From Utricularia gibba (lineage: Eukaryota > Plantae > Magnoliophyta), in contig NEEC01000007.1 of NCBI GenBank assembly GCA_002189035.1, positions 2,232,001 to 2,296,000 of the forward strand: a stretch of DNA of 64,000 bases, read 5' to 3'. Under the pieces are notes generated by a model. That model was not told the DNA's origin. It saw only the letters and a list, made by a program, of their open reading frames with translations, and did no database searches. Positions 43,960 through 64,000 of the stretch are shown in pieces. Made by a program: the position numbers and the translations under genes. The number at the start of each line of letters is the position of its first letter. Position 1 is the stretch's first letter.

Positions 43960-45106
43960 CTAGAGTAATTGTTTAGCATAAGAACATTCACAAATGCCAC
44001 TGATGGATATAGCATCGGGAACTTGCTGTTCTTGTAATGATTCTGAGCCTTGACAAAGATCCTCGCATTTTGTTGGATCCAAAGGTAGGTCTTCTAGTTG
44101 TGGGAGTGATTCCATCAGCCAAGCTCCCTTCAGAAAGCTTCTGCAAATTACTTCCCAGTATTTCCTGTCAGCCTGTGTTTCTTTCAACTGCAACTTGGCC
44201 TTTTCTGCAAGGATATTCTATCAAGCAGAGAGCAAGACATTTAGGAAAATCCCCCATTCAAATGACAGGTCGAATTTGCTTACGTCAATCAAGTTGCTGC
44301 CAAGCAAACGGTCGACAAGATGTTCAAGAATGCCGTTGGTGTACTCAGGGTGTCCCTGAATCCCCAAAACATGGTCTCTGAATGCAAAGATTTCGTTTGC
44401 AGTTTTTTCAGAAGACGCAAGAACCCGAGCCCCTTCCGGCATCACGGTCACCTGCAACGCCATGGAACATCCCCCATCAGCAGAATCACCAGAAGATATG
44501 AATGCAGGAGGAAGAAGAAGAAGAAAAGATCTCAATGCACTTCATCTTGATGGCACTCAATGATGGCAAGGTCTGGTGAGGCTCCTTCATATCCCAGAAG
44601 ATTTGTCTGGAAATCTGGAGCAAAGCTCACTCTTCTGATACCAACATCCCATCCACTTTCCGACCTTGAAACCATGCCACCCAGTGCACGGCACAAGATC
44701 TAAAAAAAGCAGCTGCAGCTTATCAAATATTTAGAAGGAACTGATACATCGAGAACCTTCATAATCTGTGCTGCTGCAAAAATGATACCTGATGGCCAAA
44801 GCAAACACCGAGGACTTTCTTCTCCATGGAGATCAAAGTTTGCAGCAGACTGCAGAGATCAACGATCCATCCTTCATCACTGTAGGCATCATAAGGGCTA
44901 CCACTAATCACAAAACCATCGTAGTACTGAAGCTCTTCTCCTTTAGGGAATTCCCCTTCAACTACACGAAACAGATCCCACTCCTCCCCTTCATCAGCCA
45001 AAGCATACAAGAAGACATTGAAGTACCCCCCATACGCCTTCACAACATAATCTGAATCACTGGCCGCAAGTAGAAGAGCGTATCTTTTACTCTCTTGGAA
45101 CCCCAT
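43960..45106 (-). CDS. Gamma-glutamyl peptidase (class I glutamine amidotransferase-like, GGP family); 4 exons
   Basis: RYALLLAASDSDYVVKAYGGYF, GFVISGSP, nucleophile motif LGVCFGHQ, IIECHQDE, LGIQGHPE. Confidence 0.9.
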
Positions 45107-46028
45107 CAGAACTCTCCAACTCCTGCGGCTTCAAATGACTCGAGAGACCTGCTGAGGACGAGAAGAGAAGAAATCCCCTACTTATAAAAGAGTAAGGGAA
45201 TCCAAGTTGTCGTTGCATGGGCATGAAGTACAAGGTTCTGCTTTATTAGGAATGAACTCAACAACTTCCCATGATTCTTGCACCAAATCAGGGTAATCAA
45301 GAAAGATAATCGTGCAGCAAGATGGCTCTTGAACATAGCATCAGCATGGAATGGAGAACTGCCAACTTTTATTCTATCTTTTTCCTTTGTTGATGTCGAA
45401 GGTTCGTCTATTGCTCACATAACCTGCATGGGGATTGTGGCATTGGTGCCAGCATCGCCTCTTTTTTCTAGTAGATGAATTAAAACTTTTAGTAAACATT
45501 CTTAATTCAAATTTTCAAATGTAAATAACTCATATATCTTATATAATTTTTCTTCTTATTGCCACGTATTATTTCATACAATCTCTTCATATATTCATTG
45601 TTTGCTACACAATTCTTCGTATACATTTTACGTTTTTCATTCTTACACTTATTTTGGTTTCAAATCACGATTTCGGATTTCATACCATGAATATCAACTA
45701 ATTTTGTATGTTTGATAGATATATGGTTGTCCTTTCCCTTATATGAACGTTTGAATTCCATATTCTATAAAAAAATATATATGTTTTTAACTTGTACTTT
45801 TCTTAATTTTTGTAAGTTTAATTGAAATTTTATCATTCTATTTTAAAATCGGGTTAAATTCATTTCTTGAATTATTTATGATTTTCGATTGAAATATTTT
45901 TTATAATAGATTAAATATATTATTAAAAAATAAAAAATAATTATCTAAAATTTAATATTTTTCAATTTTGTTAAAATATTATAAAAGTTATTCCCTGCCC
46001 TGCCTCCCTTCCCTTACCTACTCACCTA

Positions 46029-46048
46029 GGGAGGGGGAGGGGCGAGGG
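46029..46048 (+). promoter_or_regulatory. G-quadruplex-forming motif beside a MYB/AC-type element in the UGT copy 1 promoter
   Basis: GGG-A-GGGGG-A-GGGG-CGA-GGG, immediately after CCTACTCACCTA. Motif match only. Confidence 0.4.
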
Positions 46049-46192
46049 AGGAAAGCGTACCCGACTGGTAAGTGGCTTCACTTCTCGTGCCACCTGAAAC
46101 CGATACTCCGCCGGCCATATGTGTATGTATATAGGTGGAATGCCTCCTCCTTCTCCGGCGCCTTCTCAATCTGAAGCTGCGATCGCGCTGGC

Positions 46193-47607
46193 ATGGGTTT
46201 CGATCTGCACATCGGAGTTCTGGCGTTCCCCTTCGGCACGCACGCGGCTCCTCTGCTCAGCCTCGTGCGCCGCCTAGCCGATGCGCTTCCGCGCGCTCGA
46301 TTTTCCTTCTTCAGTAGCGCCGCTTCCAACGGAGTCGTGGGCGTCCATCGCCAAACGTTTCCGAACATTAGGGGATACGATGTTTGGGACGGAACCCCCG
46401 AGGGATTCGCGGGGAGTCATTTTGAGGCTGTAGGGCTTTTTCTCAAGGCGTCGCCGGGGAATTTCGAGCAAGTTGTTCGGGAGGCTGAAATTGAAGTGGG
46501 TTTACCTGTTAGTTGCTTGATTACTGATTCTTTCTTGTGGTTTTGTGGTGAATTGTCGGAGAGGTTGCAAGTTCCCTGGGTTTCCTTTTGGACCGCAGCT
46601 TCCTGCTCTCTCTCGGCTCATGCCTACACTGATCGACTGATTCAAGCTAAGGGCCTGTTACCAGGTAAAATTAGAACAGAGCTTCCTGAGATCTGGGTGC
46701 TTTTCCGTGTGCTTGAACTGCGTATCTATCTCTTATTTTGCTGCAGAGGAGAAAATTTCATTCATCCCTGGGTTAGAAAACGTCCGTGTGAGTGATGTTC
46801 CTCCTGAAGTTTTTCTAGAAGAGAATCCAACACCTCTGGCTGTCACACTGAACAAGATGTTTGAGAATCTCCCCAAATGCACAGCTCTGGTCGTTAACTC
46901 CTTCGAAGAGATCGACCCAAGGATCACTACCGACCTTCAGGCGAAGTTCCAACATTTCCTCAACGTTGGCCCCTCCCTTTTAGCCTCGTCTGCCACGGCG
47001 GCCGCCCCAGGTGACAAGTCAGGCTGCCTAGAATGGCTGGACAAGCAAACAACAACACGATCAGTTGTGTACGTCAGCTTTGGGACCGTGATTGTGCCCC
47101 CTTAAACGAACTCCTGGCCCTGGCTGATGCTCTTGAAGACTTCGGAGCTCCATTCCTGTGGTCACTGAAACCGGAAGCCCAGAAATCCCTTCCCGAGGGG
47201 TTCCTGGAGCGCACAAGCGGAACAGGAAAGATTGTCCCTTGGGCACCCCAGCCCCAAGTCCTTGCACACAAGAGCGTAGGTGTTTTCATCACACACTGCG
47301 GGTGGAACTCGATCCTGGAAAGCATTTGCAGCGGCGTGCCGTTGATATGCAGGCCCTTCTTCGGTGATCAGAAGCTGAACGGGAGAATGGTGCACGAGTC
47401 ATGGAAGATTGGTGTCAAAGTTGAAGATGGAGTTTTCACCAAGAGCAGCACAACGGAAGCTCTGGTTTTGTTGATGAAGAGTGAAGCCGGGAGCAAATGA
47501 GAGAAAACGTTGGCAGCTTGAAGGAGAAGGCAGTGAAGGCAATGGCGCCTGAGGGGAGCTCCATCAAGAATTTCCAACAGCTGCTCAAAATAGTGGGAAA
47601 ACAATGA
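46193..47607 (+). CDS. UGT78-family flavonoid/anthocyanidin 3-O-glycosyltransferase, copy 1; 2 exons, two 1-nt homopolymer frameshifts (47097-47101, 47489-47491)
   Basis: [15 protein letters not shown] (catalytic His), ITDSFLWF (Asp), PSPG box [44 protein letters not shown]. Frameshifts are defined by comparison with copy 2. Confidence 0.88.
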
Positions 47608-48300
47608 CAATGGTACTAAGCTCCTGCTCCCTGTTACCACCTCTCCATTTTTAGTCAAATAATTTACAAAAAAAAATCAAAATAATCATATACTTATATA
47701 TTATATTTATTAAATAATCATATTATTTATATACGCAATGTATTTCTTAAATTAAAAATAACTCATTATATTCATAATTATACAATGAGTAATAATATAA
47801 GAGTATATTTTCTATGTATGCAAAGAATAATAATATAAGCATATAATTGTAATAACAATTTTTAGTAATATGTATAGTAATTGATTATAGATTAATAATT
47901 AAACACAAAAAAAGCTTATATTGAAGTTAATTTATTCTATAAATTTTTTTTAAATGAACATTGTAGAATATTAAAAAAGAATTAATTTTGATAAATAAAT
48001 AACGTATACATGATACATAATTTTAAAAAATATATCTTATGGATAATTTTATATTATAGATATTAATTTATTAATAAATAATAGTAGTTGTAAATGATTA
48101 TAATTCTAAAGTATCTTTCATGCTTTTAAAATAATTCTTAAAAACAAGAATTCGACATACTTTTCAAAATTAGAAGCTATTTGGAATTGCTACTTTTATT
48201 CTTGGGCAGGAGTGGGCGGTACTTTATATTTCATACAATATAACCAATATTTTACACATACGATAGATATTTTTATCAGGAAAATGGGATAGGCTCCTTG

Positions 48301-50780
48301 TTAGGGAGGCGGGACTTCGATTGCAGTTAGAGTCTTCCTCAAAAATTTTCCGGCTGCGGACTTTGGGATTTCATCTCTGAAAAACACCCGCCGGATCCTC
48401 TTGTAAGACGCCACCTGCACAGAACACATAAACAATCCTCAACTGTGAAGCACAGCGCGGTTTCAATCCCTGCGTATTTTCCTTCATTCAGGTACCTGGT
48501 TTGCTACGTACTCCATGATTTCACGGTCTGAAACGGCGGAACCATTTGCCCGAACCACATACGCGATCGGAACTTCTCCTGCCAGCTCGTCCTTGGCACT
48601 ACAAGGAAAACAGAGTCATGTCTTAACTCAATTGGCTTAGCTTTCTGTCTTTTGTAGCAAGAGGTTGGATACGTAACGGGACAACTGCAGCATCGGCGAT
48701 CTCGGATGGGCGAGTAGCAGAGCCTCAAGTTCCGCAGGCGCCACTTGAAACCCTTTCACTTTGATCAACTCCTTCAGTCTGTCGACGATGAAGAGCTCGC
48801 CGTCATCATCCAGATACCCCAAGTCGCCTGTGTGAAACCATCCCCCGAGTCGATGCTTCTCCTGGTTGCCTCCTCGTCATTCAGGTACCCTACAGTGAGT
48901 CCAATTCAGTCATTTTCTTTCAAACAACAAGATAAACAAATGAAGGTGACGCAGGCAGGGGCTACTCGTCACCCCTCCATTGGCTGCTACTACTGATGAC
49001 CACACACATGAGGATGAATGTGATGTGTTTAAATAGAAATACTCTGCGATACCTTCTTCTAGGAGTGGAAGAATATAAATGTTTAGAATTATATGTTTGA
49101 AACGAATAATATTATGCAAGTTATAAATTAATTATAATATTTAATATTTGAACGAAACACGAGTTATACACAGGTGACACTCTAAAGATAAAGAATGTAC
49201 GAATATGTTTAAATATAGAAATTTTGGAAAACATAAATTTATGAGAATTGTATAATTGAAATGAATAATATTATGCAAAGTAATAATGAATCATGACCCT
49301 AAGCTTAATGATATCGCCCCACACTCGGTCATGCCATAACCCTGACCCCCCCTCCAAGTCAAACCCGACCCCCGGTTGCGGGAAACAAGAAACTAAAGTC
49401 AACCCAAATTCCAATTGGACGAAGGCAAATGACAACGTCAAACCAATGCACGTGCACTATAATTCAATCAAGGTCAACTCAAATTCCAATTGGAACAGAA
49501 TTTAGAAAACAAAGTCAAACCAATGCACATGCACTGCATTATTAGAGACCCTCTTTGAAATAATTTAATTTTATGAAAAAATGCGTTTTATTATCAAATA
49601 ATTTTATTCATAATATATACAATCTACTGGAATTAGGTGTTAATGGAAGATTAGAGACATTAATTACCTGCCCGATAGTAGCATTCGGAAGCTTAGGTTG
49701 AACGGAGGCGATGAGGTGGTCGCTGACCGGCGCAGCCCCGATCATGAGACTCCTGACGACGGAGGAGAGGTCGTATCGGGACGTGGCCGGAGTGTTTGCG
49801 ATGTGGAGTAGAACCGGGGCACGAGGGGTGCGATGGTAACTCGATATCGTTGTATCATATCTAGCATTTGATTTATGTCGAACTTGGACATGATCACCAG
49901 CGCAGCACCGGCGCGGAGGTTGCAAAGGAGCAGCGCTGTCAACCCGAACACATGGAACATGGGCAAGAGGCAGAGCGTGACGTCCTCAACTTTGATGTGG
50001 TGATTAGGGTTTTCGCCGTCGACTTGCTGTGCGATCGACGTCACGACGTTCTTGTGGCTGAGAATCACTCCTTTAGGAAGTCCGGTGGTGCCGGAGGAGA
50101 AAAGAAGGGTCGACGTGTCGTCCGGATCTATTGTCACCTGCAGTAAAAAAACAGAATTATCAAACCTGAAACACTGCTCAGTCAATCTTACGGATTTACC
50201 GGTTCAAATCGTGTCTCATCGGAATTCATCAACTGAGATAGATCTGTGAACCCGGCAGAGGGTTCAACGGTGACCGTCTTTGCATGGGAGATGCCTTTGA
50301 CCTGAGGAGAATAAAGGTAATTCTGATATTTTCCACCAGCTTTGAAAATCATTTCAACCTCACCTTCCCCACATACGCTGCGTGTGTAACTATGAGTTTG
50401 GGGTTCGAAATCTTGGCCATCTTCACGATGTCCTCTGCGGTAAGCGCCGGATTCGTGGGTACAGCGACGGCGCCGGCGAAGGAGGTTGCCAGGAAGGTTG
50501 CGGCGAACTCGGGAGAGTTGTGCAAGAGGATGAAGACCGCATCGTTTTTTCTTATACCCAGGTCCTGCAAGCCGGCGGCCAGTCTCCTGGCCATGAGATC
50601 CAGTCCGCCATAGGTCACCACTCGGGAGGTTACCCCGTCGATGAGGGCGGGGCGTGAGTAGTTCTCCCGAAGGTTCTGGAAGCAGTAGGTGTGGACAGGG
50701 AGATGACTCGGAATCGGGATACCAGGAAGCTCCCATCGGAATATGATGTCCTTGCCTTGCCTCACTTCCTCCACTCCCAT
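48301..50780 (-). pseudogene. 4CL-derived acyl-CoA ligase, copy 1; disrupted
   Basis: [11 protein letters not shown] is present, but the GYGMTE exon stops after ...ISLSLG (~49297) and the GEIC-containing remainder is missing. A 14-nt deletion removes the normal stop. Three 1-nt G/C-run deletions also occur. Confidence 0.85.
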
Positions 50781-51599
50781 CCTGCCCAATTTCTTCTCTC
50801 TTCATTTCCCAATATGCATATTAATATCATACGAATGGGGCCATTTTCGCAATTACAAAGACTACAGGGGGCAGAACTTCATTTCAAAAAAACAACTGGG
50901 ACTGAAAGACAAACATTTCATGTAAACCATTAAATCGTATTCAAGGGTTGACAAATTCTGATTTGTTTAACATTAATTATTTTACTTCTTTTCATAGACT
51001 CAACTATATATTATTGGGGGAGTGGGTACCAGTGGAGGGGGACAAGTATGGGTATTCTTTATTCTTTTTCCCCTATTAAATTACTCAATATTAAATCGAA
51101 AAAATTATAATTAATTGTACGGAAGAATCCCAAATATAATATAATATTTTTTTTAATTAAGTTGACATACGTATTAATTGTACTAGTTATTTGTTAATTG
51201 GATGAAGGGTGAAAAGCACATTGTTTTCATTATCTCAGAAAAAGAGTGAAGCACCAAACTAGGTGCGTTGGGCAACGCCCTTTAGTCGATATTAGCTACA
51301 TGTCATCACCATTCCTCTTTTTTTTTTTTTTTTGGAGGTGAGGGTGTCTCAATCAAATATTGAAAATAAAAAAGGGTTGATTATTTTTAACTATAGTTAT
51401 AAAAAAAAATTAAAGAAATGATTCTATAAAAATTTTATAAACCTCACAATTGATTAATTATTCACTCGTATTAATTTAGCCATAAAAAAATTAATTAGTA
51501 ACCTCATATTCATTGATATATATTATAAATCGTACCTTTTCAAATAACTCTATTAAAGAAAATTCAACTTGTCTAAAAATGCCTACAAAACAAAACTAA

Positions 51600-52690
51600 G
51601 TGGAAGTTTTTGCCATTTCCCAGTTTGGAATGAGAAGTTTGATTAATACCTAAAGGTTATTGGTTTTTCAAAGACTTATAGAGATCATAATCTATACTAC
51701 AAGAAAAATAATTTATCAGTTTTCATTTTGAGACTTTATGTAGATGACATTTTGCTCAACTCCAACTATATGGAAGAAATTGATAAAACGAAGAAAAATC
51801 GATGCAAGAATTTGAAATGAGTAATTTGGGTGAAGTTAGTTTCTATGTGAGGTTGGAAATTGAACAAATTCCTAATTAAGTAATGTTTATCTCACATAAA
51901 AAAATACTGTAAAGAATTACTAGAAAGATCTGGTTTATTAAAAGCCAATATTGCCAAAATACCAATGGATTACAAACTTCAACTCACCAAAGATGATAGT
52001 GAAAAGGATGCTGATATAAATATTTATAGAAGCATGATTGGTTATCTAACCACTTATTACATACCAGACCAGATATCTGCTATTCAGTAAATGTTTTATT
52101 CAGTACATGAAAAATCCTGAGCAAACTCACATGATAGCAGCCAAGAGATTATTAAGGTACATAAAATCTACTTTAAAATTTGGAATCTTATATCCTTATG
52201 AAAGTGATATTCACAACTCACATTGAAGGCCTTTTTTTATGCCGATTATGCTATGGCAGAAGATTCAAAAAGTGCATCGGGGTTCATCATTTTCTTGAAC
52301 TAATATCCAATTTCCTGGTATACAAAACAGCAAAATGTGATTACTCAATCAACTGCAGAATTTGAATATATCGCAGCAACTCGAGTAACAAATCCCTATA
52401 TTTGGTTGAGTCAAACTCTCAAAGAACTAAGATTTATATAGATGCATAACATTCCGTTGAACATTGATAATAAGGCAACAATATGGATTGCGAAGGATCC
52501 AACTCATTTTGGGAAGGCAAAACATATTCGTATTAGATACCATGTGATTAGAGATTATGTCAAGAAAGTAGAAATCTCACTGAAGTATATACCTAGATAC
52601 TCTCAAATTGTAGATCCTCTCACGAAATCATTAGGATGAAACCAATTTCTTGGTTTCAGATCCAAATTGTGGATGATATATGGAAAAAGA
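51600..52690 (+). mobile_element. Decayed Ty1/copia retrotransposon fragment (RT-RNase H)
   Basis: Fragmented translations LYVDDIL, EFEMSNLGEV, YRSMIGYL, TRPDI, QNVITQSTAEFEYIA and IDNKATIWIAKDPTHFGKAKHIRIRYH, with many stops and frameshifts. No LTR seen. Confidence 0.88.
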
Positions 52691-53979
52691 ATTTAGGGAT
52701 TTAACAATCTACGACGATGAGAGGAGTGATGGAGATAATAGAGATTACCGTAGAGCAATTAAAAATAAATCAATAGAAATAAACGATAAATCCGAAATCT
52801 AAAAATTAGAAAGTAAATTATTTTATCATTATATTTATTTGCATTCTACCATGTTAGATCCACGTGAACATTAAATATAAAAGTAATGAATGTAATAGAT
52901 ATATGAAATATCGTATATATTTGAGTTATTTCCTTTTCTTTGCTCAGATATTGTACAAGAATGCATTATAGGAGCTTGTTGATTTTCTAATATGTATTTG
53001 TTCTTCTATTTTTACAAATCATCAACCCCATCAGAACTCTCCAACTCCTGCTGCTCTCCACGCCTTCGATGGACTCTAGAGACCTGCGAAGGACGAGAAA
53101 AGAAGAAGTCCCCTTCTTATAGAAGAGTTAAGGAATCCAAGTTGTCGTTGCATGGGCATCAGGTACAAGGTTCTGCTTTATTAGGAATGAACTCAACAAC
53201 TTCCCATGATTCTTGCACCAAATCAGGGCAAGCAAGAAAGATAATCGTGCAGCAAGATGGCTCTTGAACATGACATCAGCATGGAATGGAGGACTGCCTA
53301 CTTTTATTCTATATTTTTACTTTGTTGATACCGAAGGTTCGTTCAATGCTCACAGAACCTGCATGGGGATTGTGGCACTGGTGCCAGCATCGCCTGTTTT
53401 TTTTTTCGTGGATGAATTAAAACTTTTAATAAATATTCTTAATTCAAAATCTCAAATATAAATAACTCATACATCTTATATAATTTTTCTTCTTTTTTTC
53501 ATGTATTATTCATTCAATCTCTCCATATATTCTTTTGTTTTCTATGTAATTCTTCATATACATTTTACGTTTTTCATTCTTATAGCTATTTTGATTTCAA
53601 ATCACGATTTCGGATTTCATACCACGAATATCAACTTATTTTGTGAATGCCAATGTTTGATAGACGTAAGAAGGTTGTTCTTTCCTTTATATGAATGCTT
53701 GAATTTCATATTCTATAAAAAATATATTTTCTTTTTAGCTTGTACTTTTCTCAATTTTCCCCAAATTGAATTGAAAATTTATCATTTTATTTTAAAATCG
53801 GAATAAATCCATTATATGAATTATTTATGATTTGAGATTTGAAATATTTCTTTTATAATAGATTAAATATATTATACTATAAAATTTATTCCCAGCCCGG
53901 CCATGTCCCCCCTCCCTCACCTACTCACCTAGGGAAGCGTAGCTGACTGGTAAGTGGCTTTATTTCTCGGGCGTGCCAA

Positions 53980-54680
53980 CAGGGTTCCCAGAAAATTATA
54001 AAAATACCCACCGACATAAAAACTGTTTACAAAATTACTCACTGCCATGTGCGTGAGTCTGACATGTGCGTTAGTGTGTGTATATACATTTACGAAATTG
54101 TCCTTTTTTAAATTATATATGTTAATATTATATGTTAAATATTATAACTTGTATTTTTATAATAATTGATGATGATTTTCAATAAAATGTTTTTAGTAAA
54201 TAATATTTTATATTTTTTCAGAAATTATTTTGATCTTATGAAACATATATTATTAGTATTAAAATTATTTAAAAAGTATTGTTTATTATAAAAACAAGTT
54301 GATTTTAGATTAAAAATTATTTTAATCTTATAAAATGTATATTGTTGGTATTAAAATTATTTAAAAACTACTATTTATTACAAAAACGAGTTGGTTTTAA
54401 GTTAAAAATTATTTTGAGATTACGAAATATATATTATTAATGTTAAGATTATTTAAAAAGTATTGTTTATTACAAAAAATTATTTGATTTTAATTGATGA
54501 TTTTCAATAAAAATATTCTACTGAAAATCATTATTTAGTATTATAAAAATATAAATTATAATATTTATAACATAATATTTACATATATAGTAATAAAGGG
54601 TAATTTCGTAAAGTTATACACACAGTGGGTAATTTTATAACGTAATTCTATGACATCGGGTATATTTAAAAATGACCCCA
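53980..54680. mobile_element. Non-autonomous TIR element (MULE/foldback-like MITE) in the UGT copy 2 promoter
   Basis: Absent from copy 1. Degenerate inverted ends (left ttataaaaatacccac...ttacaaaattactcactg; right cagtgggtaattttataa...gggtatattt...gacccc). Internal ~91-nt AT-rich unit repeated ~2.6 times (54246-54490). No clear TSD. Confidence 0.6.
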
Positions 54681-54787
54681 CCAGAACCGGTACTCCGCCA
54701 ACCATAAAGTGTACGTATACGGTACACAGGTGGAATGCCCCGCTCTCCTCCGGCGCCTCCTCAATCTGAAGCTGCGATCGCGCTGAC

Positions 54788-56199
54788 ATGGGTTTCGATC
54801 AGCACATCGGAGTTCTGGCGTTCCCTTTCGGCACGCACGCGGCTCCTATGCTCAGCCTCGTGCGCCGCCTAGCCGATGCGCTTCCGCGCGCTCGATTTTC
54901 CTTCTTCAGTAGCGCCGCTTCCAACGGAGTCGTGGGCGTCCATCGCCAAACGTTTCCGAACATTAGGGGATACGATGTTTGGGACGGAACCCCGGAGGGG
55001 TTTGCGGGGAGTCATTTTGAGGCTGCGGACCTTTTTGTCGAGGCGTCGCCGGGGAATTACGAGGAAGTTGTTCGGGAGGCTGAAGTTGAAGTGGGTTTGC
55101 CTATTAGTTGTTTGATTGCTGATTCTTTCTTGTGCTTTTGTGGTGAATTGTCGGAGAGGTTGCAAGTTCCCTGGGTTTCCTTTTGGACCGCTGCTTCCTG
55201 CTCTCTCTCGGCTCATGCCTACACTGATCGACTGATTCAAGCTAAGGGGCTGTTACCAGGTAAATCAGAACAGAGCTTCCTGAGATCTGGGTGCTTTTCC
55301 TTGTGCTTGAACTGCGTATCTATTGCTTTGCTGCAGAGGAGAAAATTTCATTCATCCCTGGGTTAGAAAACGTCCGTGTGAGTGATGTTCCTCCTGAAGT
55401 TTTCCTAGAAGAGAATCCAACACCTATGGCTGTCACACTGAACAAGATGTTTGAGAATCTCCCCAAATGCACAGCTCTGGTCGTTAACTCCTTCGAAGAG
55501 ATCGACCCAAGGATCACTACCGACCTTCAGGCGAAGTTCCAACATTTCCTCAACGTTGGCCCCTCCCTTTTAGCCTCCCCTGCCACGGCGGCCGCCCCAG
55601 GTGACAAGTCAGGCTGCCTAGAATGGCTGGACAAGCAAACAACAACACGATCAGTTGTGTACGTCAGCTTTGGGACCGTGATTGTGCCCCCCTTAAACGA
55701 ACTCCTGGCCCTGGCTGATGCTCTTGAAGACTTCGGAGCTCCATTCCTGTGGTCACTGAAACCGGAAGCCCAGAAATCCCTTCCCGAGGGGTTCCTGGAG
55801 CGCACAAGCGGAACAGGAAAGATTGTCCCTTGGGCACCCCAGCCCCAAGTCCTTGCACACAAGAGCGTAGGTGTTTTCATCACACACTGCGGGTGGAACT
55901 CGATCCTGGAAAGCATTTGCAGCGGCGTGCCGTTGATATGCAGGCCCTTCTTCGGTGATCAGAAGCTGAACGGGAGAATGGTGCACGAGTCATGGAAGAT
56001 TGGTGTCAAAGTTGAAGATGGAGTTTTCACCAAGAGCAGCACAACGGAAGCTCTGGTTTTGTTGATGAAGAGTGAAGCCGGGGAGCAAATGAGAGAAAAC
56101 GTTGGCAGCTTGAAGGAGAAGGCAGTGAAGGCAATGGCGCCTGAGGGGAGCTCCATCAAGAATTTCCAACAGCTGCTCAAAATAGTGGGAAAACAATGA
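54788..56199 (+). CDS. UGT78-family flavonoid 3-O-glycosyltransferase, copy 2; intact, 2 exons
   Basis: Same motifs as copy 1 with open frames. The PSPG box ends in GDQ, the Gln usually associated with UDP-glucose use. Confidence 0.93.
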
Positions 56200-56680
56200 C
56201 AATGGTACTAAGCTCCTGCTCCCTGTTACCACCTCTCCATTTTTAGTCAAATAATTTACAAAAAAAAATCAAAATAATCATATACTTATATATTATATTT
56301 ATTAAATAATCATATATTTTATACACACAATAAGAGATCGTATTTCTTAAAATAAAAATAACTAGTTATTTTAGGAATGACTATTGTAGAATATTTAAAA
56401 AATAAGAATTAATTTTGATAAATAAATAACATATACATGTATATTTATATTTTAAAAAGCTATAAATATTAAGATATATTTTATAGATAATTTTATATTA
56501 TAGAAATTAATTTATTTGATAAATAATAGTAGTTGTAAATGGCTATAAATCTAAACTATCTTTCATTTTAAAAAAAAATTCTTAAAATCAAGAATTTGAC
56601 ATACTTTTCAAAATTAGAAGCTGAATCTTTTTATTTCATACATTAACATCAAAATTTTACACATCGGACTTCGATTGCAG

Positions 56681-59380
56681 TTAGAGCTTTGGCCTTAGAG
56701 TCTTCTTCAAAATTTTTCCGGCTGCGGACTTGGGGATTTCATCTCTGAAAAACACCCGCCGGATCCTCTTGTAAGACGCCACCTGCACAGAGCACAAAAA
56801 CAATCCTCAACTGTGAAGCACAGCGGGGTTTCAATCCCTGCGTATTTTCCTTCATTCAGGTACCTGGTTTGCTACGTACTCCATGATTTCACGGTCTGAA
56901 ACGGTGGAACCGTTTGCCCGAACCACATACGCGATCGGAACTTCTCCTGCCAGCTCGTCCTTGGCACTAAAAGGAAAACGGAGTCATTTCTTAATTCAAT
57001 TGGCTTAGCTTTCTGTGTTTTGTAGCAAGAGGTTGGATACGTAACGGGACAACTGCAGCATCGGCGATCTCGGGATGGGCGAGTAGCAGAGCCTCAAGTT
57101 CCGCAGGCGCCACTTGAAACCCTTTCACTTTGATCAACTCCTTCAGTCTGTCGATGATGAAGAGCTCGCCGTCATCATCCAGATACCCCAAGTCGCCTGT
57201 GTGAAACCATCCCCCCGAGTCGATGCTTCTCCTGGTTGCCTCCTCGTCATTCAGGTACCCTACAGTGAGTCCAATTCAGTCATTTTCTTTCAAACAACAA
57301 GATAAACAAATGAAGGTGACGCAGGCAGGGGCTTCTGGGCACCCAGCTTCTATTGATGATTAGATGCAGGTCTAATCACCATATTCTGAGATATGTTTAA
57401 ATAACTAAACTATGCTAATATTGTATGATTTTTTTTTTTACAAAATAGAAAAACGTAAAACAATAAGAATTAGATATTCGTATCAAACAATATCATGTAA
57501 GATTCTTATCTTAATATTTGATATCAAAACCAAATTTGATTTCATTCCAATTATAAGATGAGGTGGCATTCTACTAATATGTTGAATGTCTAAGAGAGAA
57601 AAAATGTAAGAACATGAATTTAGTCACGAAACACTATATTGGTTATAAACGAAATAGAATATATGTTTAAATAGAAATATTTTGAAGAACTTAAACATAT
57701 AAAAATTGGAGTTACAAAACGAATAATATCATATAATATGAGTGTTACTCAAGACACTAGATGTGTTTTGTGCACCTTTCATGACGGAATCACTCTTGAC
57801 GCAAATCTCGCCGACTTGGTGTCGAGGGAGGGAGGCCCCTGAGGAGGGCGCCACGATCTTCAAGCGGAAGTTTCTGATGAGGGTGCCACATGATCCGCTT
57901 TTGAATCGCGAAGGCCTCTTAGCAAACCCTAAGCTTAATGATATCGCCCCACACTCGGTCATGCCATAACCCTGACCCCCCACCAAGTCAAACCCGACCC
58001 CGGTTGCGGGAAACAAGAAACTAAAGTCAACCCAAATTCCAATTGGACGAAGGCAAATGACAACGTCAAACCAATGCACGTGCACTATAATTCAATCAAG
58101 GTCAACTCAAATTCCAATTGGAACAGAATTTAGAAAACAAAGTCAAACCAATGCACATGCACTGCATTATTAAAGACCCTCTTTGAAATAATTTTATTTT
58201 ATGAAAAAATGCGTTTTATTATCAAATAATTTTATTCATAAATTCAGAATCACAAGTTAAATTTTTAATATTTCAAAATATATACAATCTACTAGAATTA
58301 GGTGTTAATGAAAGATTAGAGACATTAATTACCTGCCCGATAGTAGCATTCGGAAGCTTAGGTTGAACGGAGGCGATGAGGTGCTCGCTGACCGGCGCCG
58401 CCCCGATCATGACTCTCCTGACGGAGGAGAGGTCGTATCGGGAAGTCGCCGGAGTGTTTGCGATGTGGAGTAGAACCGGGGGCACGAGGAATGCGATGGT
58501 AACACGATATCGTTGTATCATCTCTAGCATTTGATTTACGTCGAACTTGGACATGATCACCAGCGCAGCACCGGCGCGGAGGTTGCAAAGGAGCAGCGCT
58601 GTCAACCCGAACACATGGAACATGGGCAAGAGGCAGAGCGTGACGTCCTCAACTTTGATGTGGTGATTAGGGTTTTCGCCGTCGACTTGCTGTGCGATCG
58701 ACGTCACGACGTTCTTGTGGCTGAGCATCACTCCTTTAGGAAGTCCGGTGGTGCCGGAGGAGAAAAGAAGGGTCGACGTATCGTCCGGATCTGTTGTCAC
58801 CTGCAGTAAAAAAACAGAAATATCAAACCTGAAAAACTGCCCAGTCAATCTTACAGATTTACCGGTTCAAATCGTGTCTCATCGGAATTCATCATCTGAG
58901 ATATATCTGTGAACCCGGCAGAGGGTTCAACGGTGACCGTCTTTGCATGGGAGATGCCTTTCACCTTCCCCACATATGCTGCGTGGGCAACTATGAGTTT
59001 GGAGTTCGAAATCTTGGCCATCTTCACGATGTCCTCTGATGTCAGCGCCGGATTCGTGGGTACAGCGACGGCGCCGGCGAAGGAGATAGCCAGGAAGGTT
59101 GCGGCGAACTCGGGAGAGTTGCGCAAGAGGATCATGACCGCATCGTTTTTCCGAATACCCAGGTTCTGCAAGCCGGCGGCCAGTCTCCTGGCCATGAGAT
59201 CCAGTCCGCCATAGGTCACCACTCGGGAGGTTGCCCCGTCGATGAGGGCGGGCGTGAGTAGTTCTCCGGAAGGTTCTGGAAGCAGTAGGTGTGGACAGGG
59301 AGATGACTCGGAATAGCGATATCGGGAAGCTCCGATCGGAATATGATGTCCTTGCCCTGCCTCACTTCCGCCACTCCCAT
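56681..59380 (-). CDS. Divergent 4-coumarate:CoA-ligase-derived acyl-activating enzyme, copy 2; 6 exons, one apparent 1-nt deletion at ~59250
   Basis: [18 protein letters not shown] start, [13 protein letters not shown]|[49 protein letters not shown]. The 3' intron positions match true 4CL genes. Confidence 0.88.
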
Positions 59381-60907
59381 CCTGCCCAATTTCTTCTCTT
59401 CATTTCCGAATATGCATATTAATATCATAGATGGGGCCATTTTCGCAATTACAAAAACTACAGGGGCAGAACTTCACTTCAAAAAACAACTGCGACTGAA
59501 AAACAAACATTTCATGTAAATTATTAAAACCTATTAAAGGGTTGACAAATTCTGATTTGTTTAAAACACACATTAATTATTTTACTCTATTTTCATAGAC
59601 TCTGGTGGAGGGGGGCAAGTAGGGGTATTCTTTATTCTATTTCCCCTATTAAATTATTCAATATTAAATCGAAAAATTCCAAGTAATTGTACGGAAGAAT
59701 CCTAAATATAATATAATATACTTTTTTATTAAAGTTGGCATACGTATTAATTGTACTAATTATTTGTTAATTGGATGAAGAGTGAAAAGCACATTGTTTT
59801 CATTCTCCAAACAACGTGCGTTGGGCAAGGCCCTTTAGTCGATATTAGGTAAACGTCATCACCATTCCTCTTTCTTTTTATTTGCAGGTGAGGGATCTCA
59901 ATCAAATATCGAAAATAAAAAAGTGTTGATTATTTTTAACTATAGTTATAAATTTTTTGTAAAAAAATTATTCTATAAAAATTTTATAAAACTCACAATA
60001 GATTAATTATTCATTCGTATCAATTTAACCATAAAAAACATTAATTAGTAACACTCATAGTCATTAATATATATTATAAATTGTACTTTTTCGAATAACT
60101 CTATTAAAGAAAATTTAATTGGTGTAAAACTTATGATTGAATGGGGATTAAACGTATTAGGGAGCATGCTTACTATATTTAATGTAAATGGTTATAGAGA
60201 GGATTATTCTCTGTCTTCTTCCTATTTTTTTTCTGATTATGGCACTAACACAAAATATTTATTTAATTTTATATAATTAATCTATTTTTTAAAATTGAAT
60301 CTCTTATAGGAGGACAAGAAGGGCACCTACCCGTGAGTTTCACTCCGCCGGGCCTCGACACCCAACCGGCCCATTTTCTTCACGTTTATTTCATTTATAT
60401 ATTAATGTTTTCAATTTAATTGATGTTTTTTTAAAATAAAAAATATTTTCTAAAATATATCATAAGAATAATAGAGGGCACTTGATGATTTTTTTGAATT
60501 TTGTCCCCTCCAGGCTCCAGCCTAGAAGATAATAATATAAAATTAATATTAATTTACAATAATTGAGAATTAATATATGAAGAGAATACAACAACACAGA
60601 CTGGAATATCCAATTTCTATAAATGACACTTGGGACTATGTTTACTTGGTTTGTATTCCATTTATACCCTGTCTTCTGTGGGCTCAAAGTGGAATGAGAA
60701 GGCGTGTGTTTCTTGTTTGTGAGTCGTCGTGCTTGTCCTGAAGATGAACCTGTTGCTGTTGGCTATTTGTTCTGTTCTGGGAGTGAATGGGAATCGCCTG
60801 TTGCCGTGACTCTTTCTGGGTTCAGGGGATGGACATTTCTCGGCTACGCGTTGCATTGGACCGCCATTGCGGTTGAGTTGCAACTACTGTTTTCTCGTTC
60901 TGGGGCA

Positions 60908-62965
60908 ATGCGGATGAGGGGATACATTCGAACTTCCAGTTTCAGGCGTCTGTTCTCCTTCCGACGCCACACATTGGACGATGGGCTCGCGCCGGAGAAA
61001 TTATGCAATGAGCCCAGAAGACCCAGTTGGAGATGCTTTTCGTACGACGAACTTTTCATCGCTACTCATGGGTTTTCTCCCGGTGGGTCTGATTTCTACT
61101 CTCGTATTGTCTAGTGTAATTAATTAATGTTCTGTTTGGTATCACGCTTGATTTTTGCTGTCCTTTTCTTGTGTTGTTCAGGAAACTTGGTTGGGAGAGG
61201 CGGATGTGCTGAGGTTTACAGGGAGTGCTGGGAGATGGGCAAACAATTGCGGTGAAAAGAATGGCAAAAGGGGCGAATGAGAAGGACTTTTTGACTGAAA
61301 TTGGAACTTTGGGGCATGTTTCTCACCCAAATATCATGGCTTTGCTTGGGTGCTGTGTTGATAATGGCCTTTATCTCGTATTCAACTTCTCTCCAGTGGG
61401 TTCTGTTGCTTCACTTCTCCATGGTAAGTAAAGTTAAAAGAACGTATACATGGATGAACAATGATCTAATCTCATTTTCCTTGTTCTGCGTAGATGACGC
61501 ATTGGGTCCAATAGACTGGAAAACTAGATACAAAATTGCTGTTGGAACTGCTAGAGGCTTGCACTATTTGCACAACGTTTGTCCCAGAAGAATCATCCAC
61601 AGAGATGTCAAGTCCTCCAACATCTTGTTGGCTGAGGATTTTGAACCGCAGGTGCGGTTGCAGTGCAACTTCCTTTCTGCTCTAGTTTATGGGATGGTCA
61701 CTTGACAGACAATTCTTTGCTTCAGATATCGGACTTTGGTCTGGCTAAATGGCTGCCTTCGCAATGGACTCATCATTCAATTGCCCAATAGAAGGAACTT
61801 TTGGGTAAGTAAATAAATGCGTCATAAGAATTCACTACAAAATGTGTATCTAATCCATGCTTTGCTATGTCATGAAAGGCACATCGCACCAGAGTACCTA
61901 CGGCAGGGATTTGTGGATGAGAAGACTGATGTTTTTGCATTTGGGGTGTTTTTACTGGAGCTTATTTCCGGAAAGGAGCCAGTAGATAGTTGTCACCAGA
62001 GTCTGCATGGTTGGGTGGGTGAACAGATCGACACTAAAACAAAAAACTACGCAGAGCAGCACATGCTTGACATCGTTGCTTGTGTGTCTCCAGGCTAGAC
62101 CCATTTTAAAACGAGGAGATGTAAAGCAGGTGGTTGATCCAAGGTTAGGACCCCATTACAACGTGGCTCAACTCACAAAACTCGCTTTCGCTGCCTCCCT
62201 TTGCATTCGACCATCTCCGGTCTGCCGGCCGGCAATCAGCAAGGTGACTATTAGCGCTTTTTGGTTGCTGATTTCAGAAAATTACTCTGCTTTCAGGAAT
62301 TTGAAGTCCCATTAGTGAGTGTGCAAGCAGTCTGAGTTGTGCCATTATTTTATCAGTAGCATTATTGTGTGTGTAATTTAGTGCAAGCATAGCCATATCA
62401 GATGGGGACTAGTATTGATGCGAAGCAAGTGGAACTGGTATGAGTGGGTGAGACGACAGTGATATCACTGTGAGCAAGTTGATTATTTTATAGCGACAAT
62501 ACGATACTTTTAGATAGACATTGGCATGCATGTGAACTTCCAGCTCGGATTGTTGGAAGAACTTGGTTGTAGTTGAAGAGTCCCCGCCCGTGTCTTGTTT
62601 TTTTGCTTCTCGAACTGTTCCTGTCATCACCACTTGCGTGTGGATGTACGCAGTCTGATGGCATTCGCCCCACCTCATCTGAGCAAGTTGAGATTTATAG
62701 GTGTCATTGTGTTAAGAAAACGAGAAATCCCAGGTGTTGGGTGAAGGATTTGATAAGGTTGGCGTGTCATGGTTCATAGGTATTGGAGATAATTGAGATG
62801 GAAGAAGAGATTGTGATGGATGCGCAGAGATGGAAATCCCAAGTAGAAGGAGAAGAAGAGGAAGAAGAAGAAGAGGAAGAAGATGCATGGGTGTGGGGGC
62901 TGGAGCTCGGAGATGAAGATTATGATTGGGACACGTGTTCAACCATTTCTCGTGGATCTAATTAG
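60908..62965 (+). CDS. Receptor-like cytoplasmic kinase, RLCK-VI (RBK/ROP-binding kinase-like); multi-exon
   Basis: [68 protein letters not shown]; acidic last exon 62780-62965. One apparent C-run deletion at 61784-61786. Confidence 0.9.
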
Positions 62966-63768
62966 TATCATGCATTTTGTAAAAAAAAAAAAAATCTGTG
63001 AAATTGAATAAGATTCTTTTTTTAGAATATATTATTTATTCAATATTTCCAACTACATTGTATTAGTGTTTTAATTTTCCAAATATTTAATTTGATGTAA
63101 CATACATAGAGTTGATTTAACTTTGATTATATTGGAAATCAGTGTTTTAAAAATGAGTTGAATCCATTTCACCTAGTGTTGCGCCAAAGAAGCAACTATA
63201 GTATATTTTTTGAGTTGAATCTAATCCAACATTGGATTAAATTCATGATTTTAAATCAATACTACAAAATACTATTCATTTATATGCTAATTTTGTATGT
63301 TTTATTTTTAGAACTCCATCTAAATGTTTTACATATTCTTAATTTGGTTATAAAGAAAATATTCTAATACATTATGTTTCATATAATAATTGTGAGACAA
63401 ATGCCTTGTTTAGTATTTTTGTTATTTAGGTTTGTATTATATTTTTTTATTTATTTTTCATTAATAATTGCATATTGCAATTATAAGGGAAAACTAGCAC
63501 TTACGGATATTGATGTACATAAATAGTAATTGTTTGACTATTATTAAAATAAATGAAAATTACTTCAGCTGATATTGTTTTTAATGGCGCCGGGAAAGAA
63601 GGGATGGCATCTGGGCGACGGCGATGTTGAATGAATCATCCGGCAAGCACGCACCACCGTCTATTGTTGCGTCTGTATTTTATTGGGTTGACTTTCACGG
63701 TATCTTAATGGCAGTTGGGTTTCATAAAACCCCCCGATCTCGGATTCTCCGCTGACTCCAGGGCAGCG

Positions 63769-64000
63769 ATGGCGATGGCGAAGCACGCGCACCCTGTTTC
63801 TGAAGCAAACGAGAGCAGCCCATTTGGTGGCTTAACCGCTGAGGAATTCTACGCCCGTCACTCGGTCACCCACTCCTCCGACTACATCACAAGCCGCACT
63901 CTGAAACTCAAGCTCTTCACTCAATGGTGGCTTCCCGAGAGCAGTCCACGCTGCTCAAAGGTATGGTCTGCGTCGTCCATGGCTACACCGGCGAGTCCAG
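63769..64000 (+). CDS. Alpha/beta-hydrolase, monoacylglycerol lipase / caffeoyl-shikimate-esterase-like; 5' part only
   Basis: HPVSEANESSPFGGLTAEEFYARHSVTHSS...KLFTQWW, then (after a 1-nt shift at ~63946) GMVCVVHGYTGES. Runs off the window, so not in the ORF track. Confidence 0.85.
   Translation, partial: MAMAKHAHPVSEANESSPFGGLTAEEFYARHSVTHSSDYITSRTLKLKLFTQWWLPESSPRCSKVWSASSMATPASP

Follow-up and report, generated by a model that had tools for sequence, protein, structure and literature searches.

A tandem duplicate of adjoining UGT78 and 4CL-type genes in Utricularia gibba, probably an ordinary segmental duplication

INTRODUCTION

A gene pair consisting of a UGT78-type glycosyltransferase gene and a ligase gene derived from 4-coumarate-CoA ligase (4CL) is found twice in tandem in a 64,000-nucleotide stretch of Utricularia gibba DNA (GenBank assembly GCA_002189035.1, contig NEEC01000007.1, positions 2,232,001 to 2,296,000 of the forward strand). 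We call this whole stretch the window and number all positions within it. A preliminary description, made from the sequence alone, had proposed the pair as a co-inherited metabolic module, flanked by a gamma-glutamyl peptidase (GGP)-like gene and an esterase gene as weaker members of a specialised-metabolism cluster. We describe the anatomy of the locus, the state of each gene copy and the positions of the two families in related genomes. The locus is probably an ordinary, lineage-specific tandem segmental duplication, whose paralogues act independently and are diverging.

Gene order at 43.9-64 kb was taken from the open reading frame (ORF) listing together with Pfam scans, and protein searches were made exon by exon for all genes of the locus.

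RESULTS

The duplicated unit

Each unit carries a UGT78 gene on the plus strand lying tail-to-tail with a 4CL-derived ligase gene on the minus strand, with 0.5-0.7 kb between them (coordinates in Table 1). That the pair was duplicated as one unit, as had been proposed, is borne out by self-blastn and by a sliding identity profile, which agree on a tandem duplicate with a unit of ~6.5-7 kb. Identity between units 1 and 2 is 95-100% in coding DNA and ~85-89% in unconverted non-coding DNA and flanks, and the non-coding divergence comes to ~12-15%. Two tracts stand out as nearly or wholly alike, one spanning the 3′ half of the UGT gene (46990-47724 versus 55590-56316, zero substitutions) and the other part of a ligase intron (49298-49500 versus 57928-58130, 99.5%). 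Since tracts of 99.5-100% identity lie inside a duplication that is otherwise 85-89% identical in non-coding DNA, they point to later gene conversion between the units, which would have homogenised some stretches.

The left edge of unit 1 falls just within the GGP-like gene, whose ATG lies 7 nt inside it. The duplication thus takes in the GGP/UGT intergenic region but neither the esterase gene nor the coding sequence of GGP. Just upstream of UGT copy 2 (UGT2), and not upstream of UGT copy 1 (UGT1), there is an AT-rich insertion of ~640 bp (~53990-54640) that contains a direct repeat (54222-54386 and 54314-54478) and may alter the regulation of UGT2. The spacer between the units holds a fragment (~52259-52690, with an ORF at 52442-52639) that gave a tblastx match to a repeat in a Sesamum locus and no match in a Pfam scan. 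We take it to be the C-terminal part of a copia-like pol; it may be linked to the origin of the duplication, or may be a later insertion.

The UGT78 copies

Pfam PF00201 (UDPGT) matches both UGT copies, copy 1 with an E value of 4.3e-28 and copy 2 with one of 7.7e-33. Among solved structures the top match is 8i0e/8i0d (E 7e-127 with exon 2; the PSPG stretch aligns), and 8i0e has the sequence of the flavonoid 3-O-glycosyltransferase of Scutellaria baicalensis (protein P0009); VvGT1 (2c1x), UGT78G1 (3hbf) and UGT78K6 (3wc4) come next. The best database relatives are Lamiales proteins named anthocyanidin/flavonol 3-O-glucosyltransferases, at 65-70% identity (70% for the top match), and identity to proteins named UGT78D2 is 51-62%, the bar for family membership being at least 40%. 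In the tree the UGT exons form a long branch within the core-Lamiales 3GT clade, with 65% identity to core Lamiales sequences that are 73-76% identical among themselves. The catalytic residues His17 and Asp112 are present in both copies, aligned to His20/Asp119 of VvGT1 and to 8i0e, and the PSPG box ends in Gln. Both genes are of the UGT78 (group F) flavonoid 3-O-glycosyltransferase type, with regiospecific 3-O activity predicted from these similarities.

The two copies differ at 12 residues of exon 1, ten of which fall in codons 80-116. In that patch the nonsynonymous divergence (dN) is 0.12 and the synonymous divergence (dS) 0.14, against a dN of 0.011 over the remainder of exon 1. When the differences are polarised against 22 relatives, copy 2 has the derived residue at nine of the 12 sites, including L21M, L84V, F91Y and W116C; the sites of the last three are conserved in 20-21 of the 22. 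Judged by this pattern, UGT1 is the conservative copy, with an ancestral-type N-domain, and UGT2 the diverging one, with a derived patch in the acceptor domain. With a dN/dS close to 1 and counts this low, the patch would fit relaxed selection as well as diversifying selection.

Family and pocket of the ligase

Pfam PF00501 (AMP-binding) is found on four ligase exon ORFs. The best solved structures for these exons are Nt4CL2, At4CL1 and Pt4CL1, and the closest matches are named 4CLs only, with no 4CL-like or ACS protein among them. Fragment-length relatives show only ~60% identity; with one of them (P0122) as query, full-length relatives were recovered. These define a Lamiales 4CL subclade of 531-540 aa, represented in Paulownia, Salvia, Sesamum, Perilla, Rehmannia, Erythranthe, Andrographis and Olea. 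It is the closest group to the window ligase, at 58-61% identity, compared with ~77% within the subclade.

Exon 1b and exon 2 of the ligase each join this subclade in the tree, beside the Andrographis copies and on a long branch, so placed possibly through long-branch attraction. Midpoint rooting of the tree is distorted by the long window branches, and we use only nearest neighbours from it. Assignment to class II (At4CL3-like), suggested by an N-terminal motif, was rejected; the nearest relatives are the class-I-type Lamiales subclade. On these grounds the ligase is best described as a fast-evolving member of that subclade, with 4-coumarate-CoA ligase activity predicted.

Box I ([11 protein letters not shown]) is exact in both ligase copies. 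Box II of ligase copy 2 (ligase 2) reads GEICVKS, not GEICIRG, the G-to-S change affecting a column whose conservation among 94 reference 4CLs is 97% or more. Fifteen of the 144 columns conserved to this degree are changed in the window ligase, and at most 11 in any reference. Four of its replacements, in Nt4CL2 numbering, are Y239F, S240G, N242T and S243A. The pocket of ligase 2 reads VF..A in place of IY..S; among the 94 references Phe at 239 occurs in five and Ala at 243 in three. The ligase 2 protein ends early, in PKL-stop.

Two published systems bear on this pocket. Pine Ps4CL2, which is a bona fide 4CL and has high affinity for cinnamate, carries VF for the conserved IY, and in pine exchanging VF and IY was not enough to carry the cinnamate affinity over (PMC12917453). 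Pp4CL1, an active enzyme, has Ala at 243, and Y239F reduced its activity (PMC5239791).

Alterations of both substrate pockets had been claimed earlier. This stands for the patch of UGT2 and for the ligase, which does differ from canonical 4CLs, but not for the one-residue ligase deletion that was taken as local remodelling: this deletion, after TEAG, is common to the whole Lamiales 4CL subclade.

The Andrographis paniculata relatives, two subclade 4CL copies ~22 kb apart among XTH genes (WJEG01000017.1, ~110-137 kb), are the most divergent of the references: 11 near-invariant 4CL columns are changed in one copy and 8 in the other. This hints that the subclade was relaxed or specialised more than once.

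Decay of ligase copy 1, and candidate intron gains

Ligase copy 1 (ligase 1) has several lesions. Exon 3 is cut after 49297, with ~47-58 codons gone. Box II and the splice donor are lost with them, and the intron that follows is rearranged. There is also a 14-nt deletion at the C-terminal end, after which the frame runs on to a different end (48301-48340 versus 56681-56720), and an insertion of 3 nt. With all of these, ligase 1 is a true pseudogene.

Between the two ligases dN/dS is ~0.5-0.6. Polarised replacements number 12 in copy 2 and 11 in copy 1, so near to equal that the complete ligase 2 has evolved no more slowly than ligase 1 at the protein level.

In the orthologues of Paulownia, Erythranthe and Andrographis exon 1 (residues 1-332) is uninterrupted and there are four introns, whose positions the window ligase keeps. 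Within this ancestral exon 1 the window ligases have additional 62-nt GT-AG inserts. Insert B is present in both copies (50199-50138 in copy 1, 58862-58801 in copy 2) and insert A in copy 1 only (50363-50302). The two are unrelated to each other, and each has a polypyrimidine tract. Once either is taken out, the frame and the alignment are exactly restored, and the rest of the window holds no repeat of them. They look like recent intron gains. For insert A, either a precise loss from copy 2 or a gain in copy 1 would explain the distribution.

Frameshifts and assembly quality

All eight coding frameshifts of the region are of -1 within runs of G or C. UGT1 has two (a C run at ~47097 and a G run at ~47489), ligase 2 a single one (a C run at ~59253) and ligase 1 three (at ~49819, 48846 and 48705). 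In the alignments each of these runs is one base shorter than in the paralogue, and the two shifts of UGT1 fall inside 730 nt without any substitution relative to UGT2. The other two lie outside the duplication: one in the kinase gene, where the GGG run 61221-61223 splits the conserved glycine-loop/VAIK region, and one in the esterase fragment, where the frame changes at the CCC run 63934-63936. The six exons of ligase 2 total 1601 nt, which is 3n-1, and one added base gives 534 codons.

Pseudogenisation was dropped as the reading of these frameshifts, since the same -1 defect in G/C runs affects the unrelated kinase and esterase genes. The eight shifts are most likely systematic under-calls of homopolymers in the assembly. 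UGT2 is to be read as intact, and UGT1 and ligase 2 presumably as well. Elsewhere in the window, a minus-strand gene at 8.2-12.4 kb is uninformative on this point, its frame junctions resembling ordinary introns.

Synteny in other asterids

UGT78 and the subclade 4CL lie on the same sequence in several asterids, at a distance. They are 172 kb apart in Paulownia (locus tags 19 apart), 0.5 Mb apart in Cinchona (tags 30 apart) and 3.4 Mb apart on one chromosome in Rehmannia (tags 31 apart). In two sister-species assemblies of Erythranthe the two genes are on chromosome 10, at ~18.89 and 19.06 Mb. To judge from contigs in common and adjacent locus tags, the two genes seem to be linked likewise in Buddleja, Sesamum alatum, Henckelia, Dorcoceras, Diospyros and Vaccinium. 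The loose UGT78-4CL linkage goes back at least to the ancestor that Lamiales and Gentianales share.

No ligase gene was found within 10 kb on either side of the UGT gene in Sesamum and Paulownia (the Erythranthe UGT locus was left out), and no UGT gene within 10 kb of the ligase gene in Paulownia, in Erythranthe or at either Andrographis copy. The relative loci examined share no GGP, kinase or other neighbour with the window. The tail-to-tail adjacency at 0.5-0.7 kb is peculiar to this lineage and derived. On microsynteny, put forward earlier as a check on the cluster proposal, a loose linkage over 19-31 genes is kept in other asterids, the tight pair is absent from the relatives' loci, and the repeat as such is an ordinary tandem duplication.

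Neighbouring genes

Table 1. Features of the locus in window coordinates
Feature	Position	Strand	Structure and basis
GGP-like class-I glutamine amidotransferase gene	43960-45106	-	~4 exons, apparently intact; Pfam, Atlas, motifs
Tandem duplication unit 1	45099-51578		GGP/UGT intergenic region, UGT copy 1, ligase copy 1, ligase upstream region; self-blastn, identity profile
UGT78 copy 1	46193-47607	+	Exon 1 46193-46664, intron 46665-46746, exon 2 46747-47607
Ligase copy 1, 4CL-type, pseudogene	48301-50780	-	AMP-binding exon ORFs, paralogue alignment
Inter-unit spacer	51579-53023		Boundaries from self-blastn; copia-like fragment inside
Tandem duplication unit 2	53024-60129		Includes AT-rich insertion upstream of UGT2; self-blastn, identity profile
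UGT78 copy 2	54788-56199	+	Intact 444-codon model; exon 1 54788-55259, intron 55260-55336, exon 2 55337-56199
Ligase copy 2	56681-59380	-	Exons 59380-58863, 58800-58333, 57971-57776, 57259-57046, 56966-56864, 56782-56681
Protein kinase gene	60704-62315	+	Pfam Pkinase/PK_Tyr_Ser-Thr on three exon ORFs
Esterase gene, N-terminal ~76 codons, cut by window end	63769-64000	+	Three-frame translation

The GGP-like gene has a Pfam PF00117 (GATase) match on exon 1, at 25 bits where the cut-off is 22.8, and is placed as GATase/Peptidase_C26 in the Atlas. The motifs CFGHQ and GHPE are readable in its ORF translations, giving the Cys-His-Glu triad. Its assignment to the GGP subfamily is presumptive, from similarity to AtGGP1. 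GGPs process glutathione conjugates in sulfur-metabolite pathways.

The kinase gene, presumably of a kind resembling RLCK class VI, does not encode a metabolic enzyme. It was overlooked in the preliminary description, and it lies between ligase 2 and the esterase gene. The esterase fragment (~76 codons) begins 4.4 kb past the start of ligase 2 and had no match in Pfam, PDB or ESM-Atlas; its label as a CSE/MAGL-like alpha/beta-hydrolase is presumptive, taken from a motif that the searches did not confirm. Four enzyme families had been counted within 20 kb. The GGP-like gene, the two UGT78 copies and the two ligase copies stand, but the esterase is an unverified fragment.

DISCUSSION

Origin of the locus

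The following history would account for the locus. The two families would have been loosely linked, tens of genes apart, in the asterid ancestor. In the present lineage they would have come to lie 0.5-0.7 kb apart, and then have been copied together merely as neighbours. After the duplication, unit 1 would have kept the ancestral-type UGT and a dead ligase, and unit 2 the only complete ligase together with a UGT bearing ~9 derived replacements around the acceptor pocket. The UGT enzymes would transfer a sugar, probably from UDP-glucose, to the flavonoid 3-OH by means of the His17/Asp112 dyad. The ligase would activate a cinnamate-type acid in a more hydrophobic pocket, by ATP-dependent adenylation and then thioesterification. 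GGP, kinase and esterase would be ordinary neighbours.

That the UGT and ligase genes were duplicated together shows only that they were adjacent, and their loose linkage in the ancestor means that the neighbourhood was inherited and not assembled. The two genes are convergent and so have no shared promoter, and the ~640-bp insertion lies ahead of UGT2 only; neither MYB AC elements nor G-boxes are enriched in the promoters. CHS, terpene synthase, OSC, P450 and acyltransferase are all missing from the ORFs of the 64 kb. Local gene density is ~1 gene per 4-5 kb, and four enzyme families in 20 kb of such gene-dense plant DNA are not in themselves beyond chance. A literature search on a UGT78-4CL cluster and on the 8I0E entry found nothing relevant. 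We infer that the two families are probably not functionally coupled here. The idea of a UGT-ligase module for acylated glycosides finds no support: making such glycosides takes an acyltransferase, of which the 64 kb holds none, co-duplication follows from adjacency, and ligase 1 is dead.

Alternative readings

Some observations weigh against independent, ordinary paralogues. The complete ligase adjoins the very UGT copy that has the derived acceptor patch, and the UGT and the ligase are both on long branches. The tight adjacency is not found in the five other species examined, which is how the formation of a cluster would look. Ligase 2 also has a sign of constraint, its only one: it contains no stop and no indel outside homopolymers, where ligase 1 has several such lesions. 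These points can be combined into an unlikely alternative, that UGT2 and ligase 2 form a true two-gene module. The ligase would have acquired a new function, with cinnamate or some other non-4-hydroxylated acid as a possible substrate, products of the ligase branch would be glycosylated by the diverged UGT78, and linkage would keep the co-adapted alleles together. Besides the lineage-specific adjacency and the preserved frame of ligase 2, it can draw on the nine derived replacements of UGT2 (W116C, L84V and F91Y among them) and on the ligase pocket, where VF for IY, with S240G and S243A in Nt4CL2 numbering, recalls the VF of the cinnamate-preferring Ps4CL2 (PMC12917453) and the Ala243 of the active Pp4CL1 (PMC5239791). 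But the pine swap of VF and IY did not by itself move cinnamate affinity, and the ligase dN/dS of ~0.5-0.6, with 11 against 12 replacements, indicates relaxed constraint rather than refinement. The convergent genes have no common promoter, the window lacks CHS, CHI, F3H/FLS and acyltransferase genes, and the loose linkage of the families is ancestral. Less likely again is the more specific proposal that ligase 2 is a newly specialised 4CL derivative, in a young module with UGT2, for unusual flavonoid or phenolic glycosides such as those without a B-ring 4′-hydroxyl. The hydrophobic VF..A pocket and the new 62-nt introns might then be marks of this specialisation, and the PKL end might serve as a weak peroxisomal signal.

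It is similarly doubtful that the locus is simply decaying, with real frameshifts, UGT1 and both ligases pseudogenes, and only UGT2 (and GGP) working. Such decay would explain the two shifts of UGT1, the three of ligase 1 and the single one of ligase 2, and it would sit well with the degenerate Box II, with the 15 of 144 near-invariant columns changed in the ligase lineage (no more than 11 in the 94 references) and with a dN/dS of ~0.5-0.6 at equal replacement in both ligases. What speaks for under-calls instead is that every shift is a -1 in a G/C homopolymer and that the kinase and esterase genes are hit alike. Two deletions alongside zero substitutions in 730 nt of UGT1 are implausible as mutation, and the 1.6 kb of ligase 2 are otherwise free of indels and stops. 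A full cluster of five families, with GGP, UGT78, ligase and esterase serving one pathway, is very improbable. Its members are contiguous in part, since the usual criterion of at least three adjacent non-homologous genes finds GGP, UGT and ligase side by side, with the unverified esterase beyond the kinase. Only this proximity within 20 kb speaks for it. The kinase gene interrupts the series before the esterase, 4.4 kb past the ligase 2 start, and the duplication leaves out the esterase as well as the GGP coding sequence. No scaffold-forming enzyme is present, and the glutathione-conjugate chemistry of GGPs has no evident link to flavonoid glycosylation. Nothing ties either GGP or esterase to the UGT-ligase pair, and their membership, which had been put forward as the weaker part of the cluster proposal, finds no support.

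Significance

Read as a tandem segmental duplication, the locus is a routine case of duplication and divergence of phenylpropanoid genes, and it cautions against calling clusters from proximity. It has modest value in three respects: the conserved loose synteny of UGT78 and 4CL from Gentianales to Lamiales; a fast-evolving 4CL paralogue with a pocket like that of a cinnamate-preferring 4CL; and apparent recent intron gains. It also illustrates that pseudogene calls in a genome with homopolymer under-calls need read support. Should co-expression and a biochemical link between the two genes be shown, the pair would be a minimal and very young plant metabolic module.

Comparison with known systems

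The UGT copies resemble Sb3GT1 (8i0e) in the GT1 fold signature, the Gln of the PSPG box, the catalytic His and Asp and a single intron at the same place, with ~65-70% identity over both exons. They differ from Sb3GT1-type 3GTs in their longer branch and, in copy 2, in L21M, L84V, F91Y and W116C. The UGT loci of Paulownia and Erythranthe have a CAP gene ~6 kb upstream, and the window UGT has none.

The closest kin of the ligase are the members of the Lamiales subclade, such as Paulownia Pfo_000813, the Salvia miltiorrhiza 'CCL1-like' protein, the '4CL2' proteins of Sesamum and Perilla and the tandem copies of Andrographis paniculata. It shares with them Box I, the catalytic Lys and Gln motifs, the TEAG deletion, the VRRV..GAAP motif and the four intron positions, and its predicted length is 533 aa. 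Unlike them it has GEICVKS, the four replacements Y239F/S240G/N242T/S243A and one or two extra 62-nt introns, and it lies 0.5-0.7 kb from a UGT78 gene where theirs are 0.17-3.4 Mb away. With Ps4CL2 of Pinus sylvestris it shares VF for IY at the position of the substrate-contacting tyrosine, although that enzyme is from a gymnosperm, an unrelated lineage, and by mutagenesis its specificity is not set by VF alone.

Like the avenacin, thalianol and noscapine clusters of plants, the locus has non-homologous enzyme genes side by side in a lineage-specific arrangement. Unlike them it contains no scaffold-forming enzyme and is interrupted by a kinase gene, and its core is a tandem duplicate of two gene families.

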